Shown one piece after another: positions 4,851-26,242 of a stretch of DNA of 64,000 nucleotides (position 1 is its first letter; each line of letters opens with the position of its first letter). The notes below the pieces were generated by a model, which worked only from the letters and a program-made list of their open reading frames with translations, had not been told where the DNA came from and searched no databases. This DNA is from Macrostomum hystrix (Eukaryota; Animalia; Platyhelminthes), in assembly GCA_950097015.1 (NCBI GenBank), contig CATNEN010000039.1:2914001-2978000 (forward strand), in the 5' to 3' direction. A program made the translations under genes and the position numbers.

Positions 4851-7181
4851 ATGCGACCGCCACAGTCTGCCGAAGCGGCCTCTGCTCCCGCTGCCATCTC
4901 CGCCGTCGACAAGCTGCACAAGCATCCGCTGCTCCAACAGCGGGACTTTGAGAAAGTGCGTCGCCTCGGCGTTGGCAAGTATGCCCGGGTGTACGTCTGC
5001 CGGCAGACCAGGGCCTCCTCCAAGGATGGCGCAGCGAAGACTGACAGTCGCGAATTCGCCATGAAGGAGGTCCGAATGAACACCGGCTGCCACAATGAGT
5101 ACCTCATGCGGGAGCGCGACCTACTCATCCTGTGCGCTGAGTCGCCGTTCATTGTGAATCTCATGTGTACATTCCAGGTGAGCTACAATGCGAGCTTGCT
5201 TCTTTAAATAGCAACACTTGTTTTTAGTTGAGCTTTGAGTGTTTTTTGTTAAGTCAAGTCTTTTTTGGACACTCGGACGTGGTAAGCCTACGCTCGTGTG
5301 AGGATCGGGTCTTTTTACAAGCTATAAATTTCATTAGAAAGCATCAGCTAGTATGATATAATCTCTAGCGCGTTCGCCTCTCGCACCAAGGTCCTGAGCT
5401 CGAATCCGTGGTGAGACCACATTCACTTGAGGCGCAGCCTAGAGGATTACGACCTTGAGGGCCAATCCCCTAGGCACAGTAATATTGTACAATTGCCTGA
5501 CAATGGGAAAGTCGTGGCAGATGTACAGATTGTGTTTAGATTTCAGTGTGGATTGGACAGAATTGCCTCTCGCTGGTTGCTGGCTGTTGTACCGTCAGCC
5601 ACAGCCCACAGCCATCCTGCAAGTATTGTGAAAATAGAGGGTTTTTGAAATCGACCCCTAGGTCGGATGGGTTCGCATTCTCCTCAATGCTCATTTCATC
5701 GCCTGCCACCCCGCCGTTGAATTCACTAGGAGCCGCAGCACCAGCGGGCCTACCTCATCCTGGAGCTGGGCGAAGGCGGCGATCTGTACGAGCTGCACGA
5801 AGACGTCCACCTGTTCAACGAGCAGGAGGCCAGATTCTATTTGGCCGAGATCACATGCGGCTTGGAGTTTATGCACGAGCGCGGCATCATTCACCGGGAT
5901 GTTAAGGGCGAGAATATCCTGCTAACAGGCACCGGGCACGTCATGCTGTGCGACCTCGGCCTGGCCAGGTAAGACTAGCTAATTAATATCATGCAATTGA
6001 CGGATTTATCTGCAGAAATTGCACTTGCCACTCAGGAAACTCACCGGACCAGACGATCGGGCGCGCACATTCTGTGGCACATTGTCTTACATGTCGCCTG
6101 AGATGGTGCGACGGCAGCGTTACGGTACCAAGACCGACATCTGGAGCCTGGGCGTCCTGCTGGCTTTCCTGGTTACCGGCGAGGAGCCGATTCTGGGTTG
6201 GTTACTGGCGGGATTAATGAAGCTTATTGGCATTGACTGTCACTCCCTCTGAACCTTATTGGCATTGACTGTCACTCCCTCTGAACCTTATTGGCATTGA
6301 CTGTCACTCCCTCTGAACCTTATTGGCATTGACTGTCACTCCCTCTGAACCTTATTGGCATTGACTGTCACTCCCTCTGAACCTTATTGGCATTGACTGT
6401 CACTCCCTCTGAACCTTATTGGCATTGACTGTCACTCCCTCTGAACCTTATTGGCATTGACTGTCACTCCCTCTGAACCTTATTGGCATGGACTGTCACT
6501 CCTTCAGCTTTCATATCGTCTTCCCATTTCATGGTTTCTCCAGGCAACAACGAAGATGAGAAGCAGAGCAACATCATGAAGGGCCGCTACCACCTGTCCT
6601 GCATCGCCAAGATGTCCTACGCCTGCAAGAGCCTGATATCCAACATGCTGAAGGCTAATCCGGATCAGCGCCCGACAGCGGCCGAGCTGAAGTCGCGCCG
6701 CTTTCTCAACAAGCTGGACTGGTCCGTGGTGTCCAGCGGCGGCCTGCAGCCGCCCTACCAGCCGCGCTACGGCCGCAAGTGTCGCCGCGGTGTCGGCCTG
6801 GGCGGCCTTGTCACCGGTCCGGCTAACGACGCCGCCGCTCTGGTGGCCGGCCAGGCCGAAGCCGACGATCGCCAGCAGCCGACTCGGCGTCACAAGAGCC
6901 GGGGCGACTCGCAGTTTCGCTTCCACGCCGACGACGACAGCAAGCGGGGCCAGCAACCGGCCACGGCGGCCGGCGAGGCCTCCGACTCCGGCGATGGTGA
7001 GCTGGTCGGAGACTCCGCTGGAGCCCAGCCCATGGAGGGCTTCGACTGGGTGTCGCCGGAGCTGCTGGCGATGATTCTGAGCCTGGACCTAGTGCTTAGC
7101 AATGACGACGCGGTCGGTGAAGGCGCCGTTCGTGCTGAAAGCTCCTCCGCGTCTGACGGTGTTGAAGACCTGCCCAGGTGA
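4851..7181 (+). CDS. AGC-group Ser/Thr protein kinase (S6K/RSK/PKC-like, divergent), 4 coding exons, ~454 aa
   Basis: Exons 4851-5177, 5730-5968, 6036-6196, 6544-7181 are joined by phase-compatible GT-AG introns (1365 nt total). Motifs: LGVGKYARV, FAMKE, HRDVKGEN, DLGLA, RTFCGTLSYMSPE, DIWSLG, and an AGC tail (LDW..PPYQP, MEGFDW). An acceptor at 4829-4830 implies an upstream exon. Confidence 0.9.
5366..5630 (+). mobile_element. tRNA-derived SINE family A, degenerate copy in kinase intron 1
   Basis: B-box-like GAGCTCGAATCC. The body aligns by eye with 20661-21190 (ttgaggg..tgcctgac.atg.gaaa..ggcagatgtaca; gccc.cagcc.tcctgcaagtattg). Confidence 0.7.
6223..6502. repeat. Minisatellite, 32-bp unit x9 (CTTATTGGCATTGACTGTCACTCCCTCTGAAC), kinase intron 3
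   Basis: Exact 32-bp periodicity with unit starts at 6223, 6255 ... 6479. Confidence 0.97.
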
Positions 7182-17940: not shown

Positions 17941-18494
17941 CCTAGCCTAGTCATCAATTTTCTAATCCTCGTCTCGACGCATCCAACTCTCAGGGCTGCA
18001 ATTTGAGACCATTAACTCAAACAGACAGGATCCCAGCTGCTCAGGCGGTGAGGAAAGATGAGACTTGAGTCTATAGCCCCGGCAGTATGATGTAATGAGG
18101 GCCAGCTCACCCCGCACTGATCGGCTGAGCACACATTCGAGGGCCGCATGCAGACCCTGTGGAAATTGCTTTAAAGACACGGGCTGGGAGGGTCCGACAG
18201 TCAGTAACATGTGGCAGCAAATTAGACCCAGCGCTCTCAGAAGCTGCAAGCTTTTTTCCTTCTGTTTGAAGGCCAAAAATTACAGGCTCAAGTAAGACGC
18301 CACATCTGTATCTGGGCGGCCGCAAAGACTCTTTTGATGATATCGGCTCCAACTTTAACTCCAAAAATGATCATCTATTATGGGCTAGAAAGCTACTGTC
18401 GAATAACGAAATCAAATGCAAGCAGTTTTGTCTGCTCTCCTATCTTTTTCCTTCTCCACTTGTCTTTACTATCCACTTGTCTCTATGCGTCTTC

Positions 18495-18900
18495 CCCTTT
18501 CCTCTATCATTCTCCCTCTTTAGTCTATTATTATCCCTCTTTCGTCTATCGTTCTGCCTCTTTCCTCTTTCATTCTTCCCCTTTCCTCTATCATTATCCC
18601 CCTTTCCTCTATCATTATCCCTCTTTCCTCTTTCATAATCCCTCTTTCCTCTTTCATAATCCCTCTTTCCTCTTTCATAATCCCTCTTTCCTCTTTCATA
18701 ATCCCTCTTTCCTCTTTCATAATCCCTCTTTCCTCTATCATTCCTTGCCTTTCCTCTATCATTATCCCCCTCTCCTCTATCATTATCCCTCTTTCCTCTA
18801 TCATTCTCCCCTTTCCTCTATTATTCTCCGTCTATACTCTATCATTCTTCCTCTTTCCTCTATACTTCTCCCTCTTTCCTCTATCCTTCTACTTCTCTCC
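18495..18900. repeat. 21-bp pyrimidine-rich minisatellite (CTCTTTCCTCTTTCATAATCC)
   Basis: Homogeneous core 18620-18730 with degenerate flanks. Confidence 0.85.
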
Positions 18901-19943
18901 TTTCCTCTATCTTTATCCCAATTTCCACCGTCCTCCCATTTTCTGTATCCTCCTCCAACTCTCATTTATCATCCTAGCTCTTTTCTGCTGCATCTGCTTT
19001 GGCAACAATTAATTTTCCCCCAGGTAAATAATTCAGCTAGTCGCTAATTGCTGCACAACACCATACCGGTCAGCAAGAATTCGAACCCAAGATTTCCAAC
19101 GGGAATTCTCAGTGCAGCTTGATGAAACGCCGTAGGCCTATCTAACCTGGAGACAGTCCCCATGTTAGACTAGCAGCGGCGGCAGCATCCTTGGCCTCGG
19201 TGAGTCACACTCGCCCACAGTTTCGTGAGACAGTCCGCCGGGCCCAGATTTGCATAAACAAACGGTACCCGGGGCGATGGCGACAGATGCCCCCCATACA
19301 CAGTCCAGGATGAAGCAATTCTTGCAACTACCATGTCATCTTTTCCTGCTTCGGGTCTGAAAGCTTGGACCTGGGGATCGCAGCTGACAGCTTATAACAT
19401 GGCGTGACAGCGGATTGCACAACTCTTCATCTCCCTGCATTCTGAGAGTTCCGTGCGCCAGGTGACCCAGGCTTGTCAAACTGAATCCATGCTGACCTAT
19501 TTGCTGAACAGTTGAGGGTTGTATTGGTATTTGAAGAAAAACTGATTTTTAAGTAGCCGTGATAAATTCGCGAGGACCATTATATTCCATTCACACAGAT
19601 AAATTATATACAGGATATTTTTTTGCGAATCAAAACTAACAAAAACTATGCGTTTCAAATTATAATTAATTCAATAACGAGACACGACAGCGACTTGCTC
19701 ATGTTGTTCTAAAAATAGAAAGAAAACTATGAGTCAACCATTTTGAGCTATAAATAGAAACTGAATTTTTCTATAAAAAGAATGGAAACGAGGGAGTTAC
19801 CCCTCCGAGATACTAAGAAGACATTTTAAAGCCAAAATTTACAGCCAGCCATTTACAGAGAACGCCATAACAGCAGGCCAAATTAGTGACAGAAATTTCC
19901 ACATTTTAAATAAAAAGGCAGCCGCCATCAACCGCCAGGTGTT

Positions 19944-21655
19944 TTAGACGAGTGTGGCAAAGTAGATAATGTCTGGACTGTCGCAGTCCGTCAAGCACTC
20001 TGTGCGATACAGCCTGAAGCTCCTAGCCGCTTTTCTGCCGAAACAGGGCAAGCGTGGCGCCAGATGCTGCTGCTGCCGATGCAGCCGATGGGGACAGCAA
20101 TTTTGCAGCTGGTCTGAATCTGATAGAGCCATGCTGCTGACTCCCGTGTCACTGTCGCCGCCACCACCACCGACGCAGCCGACGGCCCTAAAGTCGGAAC
20201 TCACCAGCGTTGCTGTTGTTGACAGCAAACGAACCTCCAATACCTGACGGCTGCGTCGGCGGCGGTGACACCGGCGACTGCTGCGATCTTCGGCTGCTTC
20301 CTCAGTCACCGGTGTCGGTTCAACCAGGTTCAGCCGGCGCATCCAGTCCCGAATGACCTGTCCGGACTCGTCCTGCGCATTCGCCGAGCGGCACTCGGTC
20401 GTCCTTTCCCTGTCGACGCCGTCCGCTTCATCCTCAGTTTCGTCCACTTCAAAGGTGACTCGCCGGCGTCGGCGAAGGCGCACCCGGAGTCGATAAGTGG
20501 ACTGGCGGCGCCGGCTGAGGCGGCGGAGCAGTCGCTCCACTGGGAGGTTGTCGCGAACTCGCTTCAGCTTGCCTTTGTGAGGTTTCGGAGTGAGGGAAAT
20601 GCGAGGCCAATCACTTGAATGAGTACCTGAATAAAGGAAACCTGAGCATACACCTGACAGGGGGCTGAGTGGCAGAGCGGTTAACGCATTTGCCTCTAGC
20701 ACCAAGGTCCCTGAGTTCGATTCCGCGGAGAGGCCCCATTTATTTAGAGAGAAGGCTTGTGGGCTTGTAGTGTGACTTACGCCGTTGAGGGTCAACCTCC
20801 ATGGTACAGTGAGAGTGTACACCTCCATGGTACAGTGAGAGTGTACACCTCCATGGTACAGTGAGAGTGTACACCTCCATGGTACAGTGAGAGTGTACAC
20901 CTCCATGGTACAGTGAGAGTGTACACCTCCATGGTACAGTGAAAGTGTACACCTCCATGGTACAGTGAGAGTGTAAACCTCCATGGTACAGTGAAAGTGT
21001 ACACCTCCATGGTACAGTGAGAGTGTACACTGCCTGACGATGAGAAAATCAGGGCAGATGTACACACCTGTGTAAGCGTATTTCTGCGTACAGTATCTGA
21101 CTCCTGTGTGCGTGTGTGCTCAGGAGCTGGCTGCGGGTCTGGTTTCACCAACTGATATGACATTGCCCGCAGCCCTCCTGCAAAGTATTGCTACTATTAA
21201 TATTATTAGTATTGTTGTTATTATTATTACACACCTGACAGCTCAACAACCAGTTCGTAGCGCCGAGTATCGGCCTGCAGGCACTCGGCATTCAGATCCG
21301 CATCCAGCTCGCACTCGCAGCAGCAGCCGCTGGCGGTGGCTGCGGCGGAGGAGGCGGCCGCGACTCGCTGAAACCAGAGCAGCGCGTAGACCAAGTCCTT
21401 GCACAGAGCCGCGTCGTCCAGGGACCCCAGGCCGGCCAGCCTGTACAGCCTGCCGCAGAAGGACACGTCCAGCTCGTTCATTGCGTCGACCGCATGTTCA
21501 GCAGGCTGCTCGAGCTGGCATCGTTTTTTGCGGCTCAGCTGCTGCTGCTGCCGATTGCGTCCTCGATGCTGTTTCAAGCTTGCAGCTGGACATAAAAACG
21601 AGTCAGCAGATGACACGGACGAAGCGTATGGGTACCAGTGCGAGTACCGATTCAT
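19944..21655 (-). CDS. N-terminal RASSF family protein (RASSF9/RASSF10-like), 2 exons, ~376 aa
   Basis: Exon 1 21655-21235 and exon 2 20653-19944; in-frame alternative acceptors would start exon 2 at 20641 or 20626. RA-domain-like ELDVSFCG..LAGL..CKDLVYALL..YELV, the RASSF9/10-type C-terminal motif DSDTGVSSM..SDSD, and a PDZ-ligand-like end ATLV*. Confidence 0.75.
20661..21230 (+). mobile_element. Full-length tRNA-derived SINE family A with (TTA)n tail and 11-bp TSD; constitutes the RASSF intron
   Basis: Head GGGGCT..GGCCCC, A-box TGGCAGAGCGG, B-box GAGTTCGATTCC, TTA-rich tail ~21195-21229. TSD ACACCTGACAG at 20650-20660 and 21231-21241. A homologous copy lies at 5366-5630. Confidence 0.85.
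20797..21030. repeat. 26-bp minisatellite x9 (CCTCCATGGTACAGTGAGAGTGTACA) inside the SINE
   Basis: Tandem copies; the corresponding segment is single-copy in the SINE at ~5467-5491. Confidence 0.95.
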
Positions 21656-22099
21656 GATGGTCAGCTTTCTGATTGCTCAGCAGCAGATGGCTTCAGCGGT
21701 CCCCGAATCCGCCTTTAAAATGAGACAGAAGAAAGAAAATCTTCAGCGGATTTCTAGCCCCAGGGCTTCTCCGATTGGACGGGATCCCATTTTCCCACGG
21801 CCCGCCGCGGCGGTCGCCGTTTCTTTTACTTTCCATACACACTCGCGATTTCTCTGCCCCAGTTTTGGACTTTTTTTTCCTAATTCGACCCCCGCCAGAA
21901 AAGATATTAATGAGCCCATGAATATTTATTCCAGGAAACGCTGATCCGAACAATCAAACTGACTACTCGAATCCCTGAATCCCAGGCTCCGCAGCAACAG
22001 TTCTTGTTTCGTCAAAGAAAATTTTGCATAAAATTTTAGGCATAAAAATACAATGTCATTTGAGAGCGTTGACAAATGTCGTGTTTGAAATGCTCGTCC

Positions 22100-25000
22100 C
22101 TTCTGTCTCTTCTCTCTTCTCTTCTCTCTTCTCTCATCTCTTCTCTTCCCTTCTGTTCTTCTCTCTCCCCCCTTCTGTTCTTCTCTCTCCCCCTTCTGTT
22201 CTTCTCTCTCCCCTTCTGTTCTTCTCTCTCCCCCTTCTGTTCTTCTCTCTCTCCCCTTCTGTTCTTCTCTCTCCCCCATTCTGTTCTTCTCTCTCCCCAT
22301 TCTGTTCTTCTCTCTCCCCTTCTGTTCTTCTCTCTCTCCCACTCTGTTCTTCTCTCTCCCCTTCTGTTCTTCTCTCTCCCCCCTTCTGTTCTTCTCTCTC
22401 CCCTTCTGTTCTTCTCTCTCTCCCATTCTGTTCTTCTCTCTCCCCCCTTCTGTTCTTCTCTCTCCCCTTCTGTTCTTCTCTCTCTCCCCCTTCTGTTCTT
22501 CTCTCTCACCCTTCTGTTCTTCTCTCTCTCCCACTCTGCTCTTCTCTCTCTCCCACTCTGTTCTTCTCTCTCCCCTTCTGTTCTTCTCTCTCCCCCCTTC
22601 TGTTCTTCTCTCTCCCCCCTTCTGTTCTTCTCTCTCCCTTCTGTTCTTCTCTCTCCCCTTCAGTTCTTCTCTCTCCCCTTCTGTTCTTCTCTCTCTCCCC
22701 TTCTGTTCTTCTCTCTCCCCCATTCTGTTCTTCTCTCTCCCCTTCTGTTCTTCTCTCTCTCCCATTCTGTTCTTCTCTCTCTCCCACTCTGTTCTTCTCT
22801 CTCCCCTTCTGTTCTTCTCTCTCCCCCCTTCTGTTCTTCTCTCTCCCCTTCTGTTCTTCTCTCTCTCCCATTCTGTTCTTCTCTCTCCCCCTTCTGTTCT
22901 TCTCTCTCCCCCACTCTGTTCTTCTCTCTCCCCTTCTGTTCTTCTCTTTCTCCCCTTCTGTTCTTCTCTCTCCCCCATTCTGTTCTTCTCTCTCCCCCTT
23001 CTGTTCTTCTCTCTCCCCTTCTGTTCTTCTCTCTCTCCCCTTCTGTTCTTCTCTCTCTCCCATTCTGTTCTTCTCTCTCCCCCTTCTGTTCTTCTCTCTC
23101 CCCCACTCTGTTCTTCTCTCTCCCCCTTCTGTTCTTCTCTCTCCCTTCTGTTCTTCTCTCTCTCCCATTCTGTTCTTCTCTCTCCCCCTTCTGTTCTTCT
23201 CTCTCCCCCACTCTGTTCTTCTCTCTCCCCTTTCTGTTCTTCTCTCTCCCTTCTGTTCTTCTCTCTCCCCTTCTGTTCTTCTCTCTCCCCCACTCTGTTC
23301 TTCTCTCTCCCCCTTCTGTTCTTCTCTCTCCCCCTTCTGTTCTTCTCTCTTCCCCTTCTGTTCTTCTCTTTCTCCCCTTCTGTTCTTCTCTCTCCCCCAT
23401 TCTGTTCTTCTCTCTCCCCCTTCTGTTCTTCTCTCTCCCCTTCTGTTCTTCTCTCTCTCCCCTTCTGTTCTTCTCTCTCTCCCATTCTGTTCTTCTCTCT
23501 CCCCCTTCTGTTCTTCTCTCTCTCCCATTCTGTTCTTCTCTCTCCCCCTTCTGTTCTTCTCTCTCCCCCACTCTGTTCTTCTCTCTCCCCCCTTCTGTTC
23601 TTCTCTCTCCCCTTCTGTTCTTCTCTCTCTCCCATTCTGTTCTTCTCTCTCCCCTTCTGTTCTTCTCTCTCTCCCCTTCTGTTCTTCTCTCTCTCCCATT
23701 CTGTTCTTCTCTCTCTCCCCTTCTGTTCTTCTCTCTCTCCCATTCTGTTCTTCTCTCTCCCCCTTCTGTTCTTCTCTCTCCCTTCTGTTCTTCTCTCTCC
23801 CCTTCAGTTCTTTTCTCACCCCCTTCTGTTCTTCTCTCTCTCCCCCTTCTGTTCTTCTCTCTCCCCTTCTGTTCTTCTCTCTCCCCCTTCTGTTCTTCTC
23901 TCTCCCACTCTGTTCTTCTCTCCCCCTTCTGTCTTCTCTCTCTCCCATTCTGTTGTTCTCTTTTCACCATGGCTCTGTCTTCGATTTCCCAGGCCCACAA
24001 TGTTCCCACTTTCATCCGCTCTGTTCGCCTCGAATCCCGAATCAATCCTCTATGAATCCGGGCCATTCTCTCTCCCCCTTCTGTTCTTCTCTCTCCCTTC
24101 TGTTCTTCTCTCTCCCCCTTCTGTTCTTCTCTCTCCCCTTCAGTTCTTCTCTCTCCCCCTTCTGTTCTTCTCTCTCTCCCATTCTGTTCTTCTCTTTTCA
24201 CCATGGCTCTGTCTTCGATTTCCCAGGCCCACAATGTTCCCACTTTCATCCGCTCTGTTCGCCTCGAATCCCGAATCAATCCTCTATGAATCCGGGCCAT
24301 TCTCTCTCCCCCTTCTGTTCTTCTCTCTCCCTTCTGTTCTTCTCTCTCCCCCTTCTATTCTTCTCTCTCCCCTTCAGTTCTTCTCTCTCCCCCTTCTGTT
24401 CTTCTCTCTCTCCCATTCTGTTCTTCTCTCTCCCCTTCTGTTCTTCTCTCTCTCCCATTCTGTTCTTCTCTCTCCCCTTCTGTTCTTCTCTCTCTCCCAT
24501 TCTGTTCTTCTCTCTCCCCCTTCTGTTCTTCTCTCTCCCTTCTGTTCTTCTCTCTCCCCTTCAGTTCTTCTCTCACCCCCTTCAGTTCTTCTCTCTCCCC
24601 CTTCTGTTCTTCTCTCTCTCCCATTCTGTTCTTCTCTCTCTCCCCTTCTGTTCTTCTCTCTCTCCCATTCTGTTCTTCTCTCTCCCCCTTCTGTTCTTCT
24701 CTCTCCCCCATTCTGTTCTTCTCTCTCCCCTTCTGTTCTTCTCTCTCTCCCATTCTGTTCTTCTCTCTCTCCCCTTCTGTTCTTCTCTCTCCCCCATTAT
24801 GTTCTTCTCTCTCCCCTTCTGTTCTTCTCTCTCTCCCATTCTGTTCTTCTCTCTCTCCCACTCTGTTCTTCTCTCTCCCCTTCTGTTCTTCTCTCTCCCC
24901 CCTTCTGTTCTTCTCTCTCCCCTTCTGTTCTTCTCTCTCTCCCATTCTGTTCTTCTCTCTCCCCCTTCTGTTCTTCTCTCTCCCCCACTCTGTTCTTCTC

Positions 25001-25894
25001 TCTCCCCCTTCTGTTCTTCTCTCTCCCTTCTGTTCTTCTCTCTCCCCTTCAGTTCTTCTCTCACCCCCTTCTGTTCTTCTCTCTCTCCCCCTTCTGTTCT
25101 TCTCTCTCCCCCTTCTGTTCTTCTCTCTCCCCCTTCTGTTCTTCTCTCTCCCCTTCTGTTCTTCTCTCTCTCCCATTCTGTTCTTCTCTCTCCCCCTTCT
25201 GTTCTTCTCTCTCCCCTTCAGTTCTTCTCTCTCCCCCTTCTGTTCTTCTCTCTCCCTTCTGTTCTTCTCTCTCCCCCTTCTGTTCTTCTCTCTCCCCTTC
25301 AGTTCTTCTCTCTCCCCCTTCTGTTCTTCTCTCTCCCCCTTCTGTTCTTCTCTCTCCCCCTTCTGTTCTTCTCTCTCCCCCTTCAGTTCTTCTCTCACCC
25401 CCTTCTGTTCTTCTCTCTCTCCCTTCTGTTCTTCTCTCTCCCCCTTCTGTTCTTCTCTCTCCCCCTTCAGTTCTTCTCTCACCCCCTTCTGTTCTTCTCT
25501 CTCTCCCCCTTCTGTTCTTCTCTCTCCCCTTCTGTTCTTCTCTCTCCCCCCCACTCTGTTCTTCTCTCTCCCCCTTCTGTTCTTCTCTCTCCCTTCTGTT
25601 CTTCTCTCTCCCCTTCAGTTCTTCTCTCACCCCCTTCTGTTCTTCTCTCTCTCCCCCTTCTGTTCTTCTCTCTCCCCTTCTGTTCTTCTCTCTCCCCCTT
25701 CTGTTCTTCTCTCTCCCCTTCTGTTCTTCTCTCTCCCACTCTGTTCTTCTCTCCCCCTTCTGTCTTCTCTCTCTCCCATTCTGTTGTTCTCTTTTCACCA
25801 TGGCTCTGTCTTCGATTTCCCAGGCCCACAATGTTCCCACTTTCATCCGCTCTGTTCGCCTTGAATCCCGAATCAATCCTCTATGAATCCGGGC
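22100..25894. repeat. CT-rich ~21-bp minisatellite (TTCTGTTCTTCTCTCTCCCC) with three copies of a ~100-bp complex cassette
   Basis: 3.8-kb pyrimidine array; cassette at 23961-24064, 24195-24298 and 25792-25894. Confidence 0.95.
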
Positions 25895-26242
25895 TTTCTC
25901 TCAATTCCCAGCCAGCCATGTCTGACAAGCCTGAGAGCACTCAGACAGCTAAAAAAACTGGCATCTGCGCTCAGCCAAATTTGTTCGTTTCTGGATTTGC
26001 TTATCAGTACTTTAAGTCCTCCATCGAAATGCACTGAAATGAATTCTGCTACTTTGAGCCTTTTTCTATAAATGTACTCTTAGAAATCGGAACTCACTAC
26101 TTTTGCAATTTAACTTAAAGTAGTAAGAAAGGAATTTTTTCTTGGAAACTTACAGGTACTAATTACTTTAACTATCAAAGAATACTTGACCTGTAAAAAA
26201 AACTTTGATTCTGTGTAATGCTATTTTAAGACTAGCCTAGAA

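Follow-up and report, generated by a model that had tools for sequence, protein, structure and literature searches.

The window, a stretch of 64,000 nucleotides of the Macrostomum hystrix genome, carries on its minus strand an orphan, single-copy gene of two exons, between which lies a SINE in antisense orientation. The reading frame of the gene opens with an ATG at 21655 and proceeds to ...YELVVELSGV, where it meets a TAA. A second open stretch on the same strand, in matching frame, runs from 20660 to a stop codon at 19946-19944. We searched the assembly for a paralogue or an empty allele using exon 1 and found that exon to be present in a single copy. In the order in which the gene is read, the features of the locus are:

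21235-21655, minus strand: coding part of exon 1, from the ATG at 21655 to the last exon base at 21235, ending in codon phase 1
20573-21234, minus strand: spliced intron of 662 nt with GT..AG ends, phase 1, from the contig junction in runs X2, X3 and X4
21231-21241, minus strand: copy of the target-site duplication (TSD) adjoining the SINE tail; it carries the used donor CAG/GTGT and is followed by GTAATAA of the tail
20661-21230, plus strand: SINE copy of 570 bp, antisense to the gene, delimited by family alignment
20795-21030, without strand: minisatellite of 26 bp x 9.1, grown from a single SINE unit
20650-20660, minus strand: TSD copy adjoining the SINE head; its CAG/GTGT is intronic and unused as an acceptor in steady-state RNA contigs
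20573-20653, minus strand: probable ancestral intron of 81 nt, GTGTAT...CTCAC(-19)...AAAG, from zero RNA-contig depth and composition
19944-20572, minus strand: coding part of exon 2 including the stop codon at 19946-19944, from the open reading frame, the contigs and composition

Homology searches were performed on the two exons separately, and the joined reading was used for composition only. Pfam returned no family at E<=1 for either exon, exon 2 brought up no relative in a word-index search, and phmmer with exon 1 found no match among 1.84 billion representative proteins. A single-sequence AlphaFold model reached a pLDDT of 44 and consisted of helices only, too poor for a fold search. The first-pass annotation of the locus had called the gene RASSF9/10-like; Pfam, word search and phmmer lend this identity no support, with no RA domain and no homologue for either exon, and we dropped the label.

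Tandem repeats flank the gene. Directly upstream, at 22100-26040, is a very long G/A-rich array of short units like GAGAGAAGAACAGAAGG, which gives rise to spurious open reading frames, the longest 1337 aa, in several frames and on both strands. Downstream, at 18334-19047, an open reading frame consists of repeated PSFLFHN/PFLYHY-like units and is most likely another tandem repeat and no gene.

As the first-pass annotation had pointed out, an 11-bp direct repeat, ACACCTGACAG, occurs at 20650-20660 and again at 21231-21241; the two copies are identical and read CTGTCAG/GTGT on the coding (minus) strand. The repeat abuts both ends of the element as the family defines them, with the head starting at 20661 and the A/T-rich, (TTA)n-like tail ending at 21230. 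When aligned with 10 other copies, the head of the window copy is in register with the first base of the family. An in-register head at one end and the family tail at the other show that the repeat is a genuine target-site duplication and no chance match.

The SINE family is dispersed and present in high copy number. In the M. hystrix genome, a search turned up more than 1761 first-look candidates, and counts of heads came to 1283 with a 20-nt degenerate pattern and 968 with a 19-mer of the head. The copies have simple-repeat, (TTA)n-like tails, and TSDs of 9-18 nt were found in some of them. The window copy had been described as an antisense tRNA-SINE; it is indeed an antisense copy of an abundant SINE, but neither ARAGORN nor Rfam called a tRNA in the head. 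Motifs resembling an A box and a B box (TGGCAGAGCGG and GAGTTCGATTCC), read by eye in the alignment, are conserved across copies, and a tRNA-derived origin of the head is plausible. Elsewhere in the window, at 5366-5423, lies a fragment of the SINE head, 59 nt with 81% identity to head positions 22-80.

Other copies of the family measure ~360-380 bp and contain one 26-bp unit, whereas the window copy contains 9.1 units, in agreement with the earlier claim that the SINE has gained a minisatellite. The window copy departs from the majority base of the 10 other copies at 8.5% of positions, compared with 2.6-8.1% for those copies themselves, and it has suffered deletions of 13 nt and 29 nt. This divergence, the indels and the expanded minisatellite together mark the copy as old and make a lasting presence/absence polymorphism unlikely. 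The minisatellite is free of stop codons in all three minus-strand frames, and open reading frames of 96, 123 and 373 aa pass through the element (20740-21163). That they are open follows from the repeat unit itself and gives no evidence of coding.

To follow splicing we turned to sequencing contigs. Four runs of one study (X1-X4) contain the stretch, and three further runs (X5-X7) contain next to none of its words. No run is recorded as RNA; X2-X4 are labelled 'DNA?', and we take them to be RNA because of the way in which they cover the locus. X1, with 197 Mb of contigs and a depth of ~80x everywhere, looks like a genomic sample. In X2, X3 and X4, which comprise 42-63 Mb of contigs, coverage of the locus is limited to 19700-20571 and 21234-21683, and depth is zero over 20580-20659 and 21700-22090. 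Because coverage is limited to exons, X2-X4 behave as transcriptomes and their contigs as spliced mRNA. The RNA-type contigs span 21234-21683 at exon 1, whose boundary we placed by the GT-AG rule.

One contig in each of X2, X3 and X4 (records 9, 19 and 24) joined 20571 to 21234 with no letters between. The joint is ambiguous by 1 nt (G), and its canonical placement puts the GT at 21234-21233 and the AG at 20574-20573. The junction is then 21235->20572 in all three runs, with GT..AG ends and with the frame kept; a genomic deletion that happened to have exact GT..AG ends and to preserve the frame is a far-fetched alternative. The spliced reading, ...ELS-G-KLKRV..., stays in frame over 349 codons with a GC3 of 0.69, and retention of the SINE would give a TAA two codons past the junction. 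The contigs of the three runs thus bear out the expectation that the SINE is spliced out and the gene expressed with an intact frame.

Only one of the two splice sites is the one that had been predicted. The donor is: the upstream duplicate, CAG/GTGTGT, is used, with 21234 as the first intron base, and the change from GTGTAT to GTGTGT contributed by the SINE tail is seen in the sequence. The acceptor, by contrast, had been placed in the TSD (21235->20653), with 20641 and 20626 as alternatives, and none of these junctions is present in the contigs. The acceptor in use is the fifth AG (20573), 81 nt past the TSD; splicing passes over the four before it, at 20654, 20642, 20627 and 20614. The SINE had also been regarded as the only interruption of the frame, but the contigs remove 81 further bases (20653..20573) along with it. 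The boundaries of the intron therefore do not coincide with those of the element plus its TSD: the donor lies within one duplicate and the acceptor 81 nt beyond the second copy.

The interpretation of the locus turns on these 81 nt. When the SINE and one duplicate are removed, they remain as GTGTAT...CACAAAG (20653..20573), a segment with GT..AG ends of its own. The frame is then continuous, as had been noted, and the open stretch is 1149 nt long. In composition, the segment is unlike the rest of the gene. Its GC content is 0.457, whereas coding 81-nt windows do not fall below 0.49 and have a median of 0.62, and the coding sequence overall stands at 0.615. Read in frame, its GC3 is 9/28 = 0.32; the coding sequence has 0.69 and its lowest 28-codon window 0.43. 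Even at a GC3 of 0.65, the binomial probability of 9/28 or fewer is 4e-4, and the likelihood ratio is ~200 in favour of an intron-like composition. A length of 81 nt is normal for the short, AT-richer introns of this genome: in CCT genes we found an intron of 75 nt with a GC content of 0.44 (L014 2143-2217), another of 123 nt (L015 2208-2330) and, in further CCT genes, gaps between exons of ~71 and ~90 nt.

Splicing itself points in the same direction. As a rule, the first AG past the branch point is the one that gets used. With four AGs skipped, this rule places the branch point within the last ~40 nt of the intron, in non-SINE sequence, where a CTCAC with its A at -19 lies behind a run of pyrimidines. 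One property of the segment speaks against an intronic origin: it is a multiple of 3 and has no in-frame stop, so that it can be read as 27 codons (GVCSGF...PKPHK), as expected if it was once coding. Shuffled sequences of the same composition are stop-free in 31% of cases, which, with a further factor of 1/3 for length, gives a chance of ~0.10 for this coincidence.

Taking composition and splicing logic together, we consider it likely that the 81 nt were already intronic before the SINE arrived. The insertion site had been described as probably mid-exon, a view that sits poorly with these data. An older intron at the site, in the form of a 27-nt remnant, had been named as something that would refute that view; what we find has the look of an older intron, but is 81 nt long rather than 27. 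We propose that, quite probably, an 81-nt intron was present beforehand, the SINE entered it between positions +4 and +5 and thereby gave it a second copy of its donor, and no intron was born in the process. The central claim of the first-pass annotation, a new intron with both splice sites supplied by the TSD, most likely fails here, given an acceptor outside the TSD and 81 nt of intron-like sequence.

The sequence of events would have been as follows. The gene would previously have had a short GT-AG intron of 81 nt in phase 1, now found at 20653..20573. The SINE would have entered in antisense orientation by target-primed reverse transcription between intron positions +4 and +5, with a priming nick on the coding strand at GTGT/ATGC, as suggested by the position of the tail. 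The 11 bp of the TSD would comprise 7 bases from the end of the exon and 4 from the start of the intron (CTGTCAG/GTGT). Together with the tail, the upstream duplicate would then have come to read CAG/GTGTGTAA, gaining a G at +5 relative to the old CAG/GTGTAT. By the standard rule of U1 pairing a G at +5 favours a donor, and the new donor should thus equal or surpass the old one. The insertion would have left the original acceptor, AAAG/GC, and its branch region, with CTCAC at -19, untouched and still in use; the intron would have been lengthened to 662 nt, and the mRNA would be unchanged.

The same origin could be combined with a different route of splicing, in which the intron is removed in two nested steps. 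An inner intron, with its donor at 21234 and the CAG at 20654 as its acceptor, would be excised first, and the rebuilt CAG/GTGTAT would then be spliced to 20573. The second duplicate does present an intact AG/GT, preceded by the pyrimidine-rich antisense head and a TTAAC, and fungi have nested introns in which a donor is split (PMC12403724). Against this route, splicing can go straight from the upstream donor to the old acceptor, which makes a second step needless. No intermediate was seen among the contigs, which could not show one. The perfect match of the duplicates cannot be called upon either: at 8.5% divergence, an 11/11 TSD has a probability of ~0.38, and we rejected it as a sign of constraint. 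We regard two-step removal as unlikely, though it is the strongest of the competing accounts. If it were true, the locus would hold a twin intron in an animal, with a SINE as its origin: a recursive splice site made by a retroposon, with a zero-length exon.

We give a lower standing to a true gain of an intron, in which the SINE would have landed mid-exon at a CAG/GT and splicing would have recruited a cryptic in-frame acceptor 81 nt downstream, at the cost of 27 codons. Such an origin would account for the continuous 1149-nt frame across the empty site and for a segment that is both stop-free and a multiple of 3 (chance ~0.10), and other eukaryotes are on record as having introners that stem from non-LTR retrotransposons (PMC12130899). 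It would, however, require a segment of coding composition to have fallen from a GC3 of 0.69 to 0.32, and the drift since the insertion, ~8.5% if neutral, is too small for such a change. At a mid-exon site, moreover, the CAG of the duplicate would restore the original mRNA exactly, which leaves no obvious reason for it to be skipped along with three more AGs. The acceptor that is used comes with a branch-like motif and a run of pyrimidines of its own, both in sequence outside the SINE. These results make intron gain at this locus improbable.

Least probable of all is that the SINE-bearing allele is dead or mis-spliced and that the contigs come from a SINE-less allele with the 81-nt intron: its mRNA would be identical, so that the junction cannot discriminate, and X2 and X3 contigs differ from the assembly by several SNPs and by indels in the 3'UTR, as expected if other haplotypes are expressed, but the insertion is old and unlikely to have stayed polymorphic, both exons are open over the 349 codons at the coding GC3 given above, no empty-site contig is listed in the deep DNA run X1, and X4 contigs that are near the assembly haplotype have the same junction. 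Returning to insertion into an existing intron, we infer that the SINE is probably fixed and that alleles carrying it are the probable source of the transcripts. The differences from the assembly in the 3'UTR are substitutions and small deletions clustered at 19907-19930 in X2 and X3 contigs; these variants mean that more than one haplotype is expressed. Coding SNPs in the RNA-type contigs (3 synonymous and 2 non-synonymous) are too few for a test of selection.

The first-pass annotation had further proposed that this SINE family may generate introns, and had looked to a genome-wide count of copies with CAGGT in their TSD. Of the 1283 heads, 6 have ACCTG, which is CAGGT read in antisense, at a distance of 0-6 nt on their upstream side. 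This is no more than chance, for which a rough expectation is 8-16, the upper figure coming from a sample biased towards that word. By this crude test, neither a preference of the family for CAGGT sites nor its survival at them could be detected.

Among the six ACCTG loci, a long and unique open frame across the empty site exists at the present locus only. We set the other five aside: one sits within a tandem repeat, another has an open stretch of only 201 nt, and three are without a detectable duplication. The locus with the 201-nt open stretch across its empty site (L020, G000:C29:957250-960279) holds a 354-bp copy whose head lies at ~1511 of the reverse-complemented locus and whose 11-bp TSD, TACCTGCAGTA, reads TACTGCAG/GTA in antisense; here, too, the SINE may have inserted at a splice junction or close to one. 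The tandem-repeat locus (L019, G000:C24:3635178-3638208) holds a copy with an 18-nt TSD inside the repeat, which yields GIPAT-like units in translation, and we discarded its long open stretch as a repeat artefact.

Insertions of SINEs such as Alu into introns near splice sites are an ordinary occurrence, and recursive splice sites with zero-length exons are likewise of a known kind. The present locus resembles ordinary SINE and Alu insertions in that a retroposon lies in antisense orientation a few bases from a splice site and is tolerated by the gene. It departs from them in that the insertion is unusually close (+4/+5), the TSD copies the whole core of the donor, and the new upstream donor takes over while the old one becomes an internal decoy. 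As in recursive splice sites and in stwintrons (PMC12403724), an inner, potentially spliceable unit interrupts an outer donor and leaves an internal AG/GT. In stwintrons the inner intron must be removed first so that the outer donor is rebuilt, whereas here a complete upstream donor permits removal in one step.

A comparison with introners, transposable elements whose insertion creates introns, is also instructive. Introners derived from non-LTR retrotransposons have already been documented, making up ~5% of classified families (PMC9860276, PMC12130899), and an earlier survey recorded introners in only two animal groups (PMC9860276). Like an introner, the SINE described here belongs to a dispersed kind of element, sits within a gene from whose RNA the spliceosome takes it out, and has a TSD that supplies a splice site, in this case the donor. 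Unlike in introners, the acceptor and the 81 nt before it are not part of the element and resemble an older intron, most likely no intron was gained, and the heads of the family show no excess of CAGGT-type TSDs.

We therefore see the locus as a tidy but ordinary case, in which a gene tolerates a hit 4 nt from a splice donor and in which TSD and element tail jointly rebuild a working donor slightly nearer the consensus than the old one. It also calls for caution, because a SINE that has CAG/GT in its TSD, in a frame that stays open once the element is taken out, looks exactly like an insertion that creates an intron. As transcripts and composition show here, such an open frame can belong to a short intron that is a multiple of 3 and stop-free, with a chance of ~1 in 10. 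The locus may serve as a useful false-positive template for 'retro-introner' calls, and other calls in this genome that equate a SINE with an intron need checking junction by junction.

A minor observation concerns the 5' end of the gene. Alignments of the RNA-type contigs end at 21683, 21678 and 21640, and in two of the contigs a further 9 and 17 letters are left unaligned. Near these ends, at 21692-21691, is an AG. About 20% of M. hystrix genes are trans-spliced (PMC10468722), and the unaligned letters could be a spliced leader or merely variant ends.
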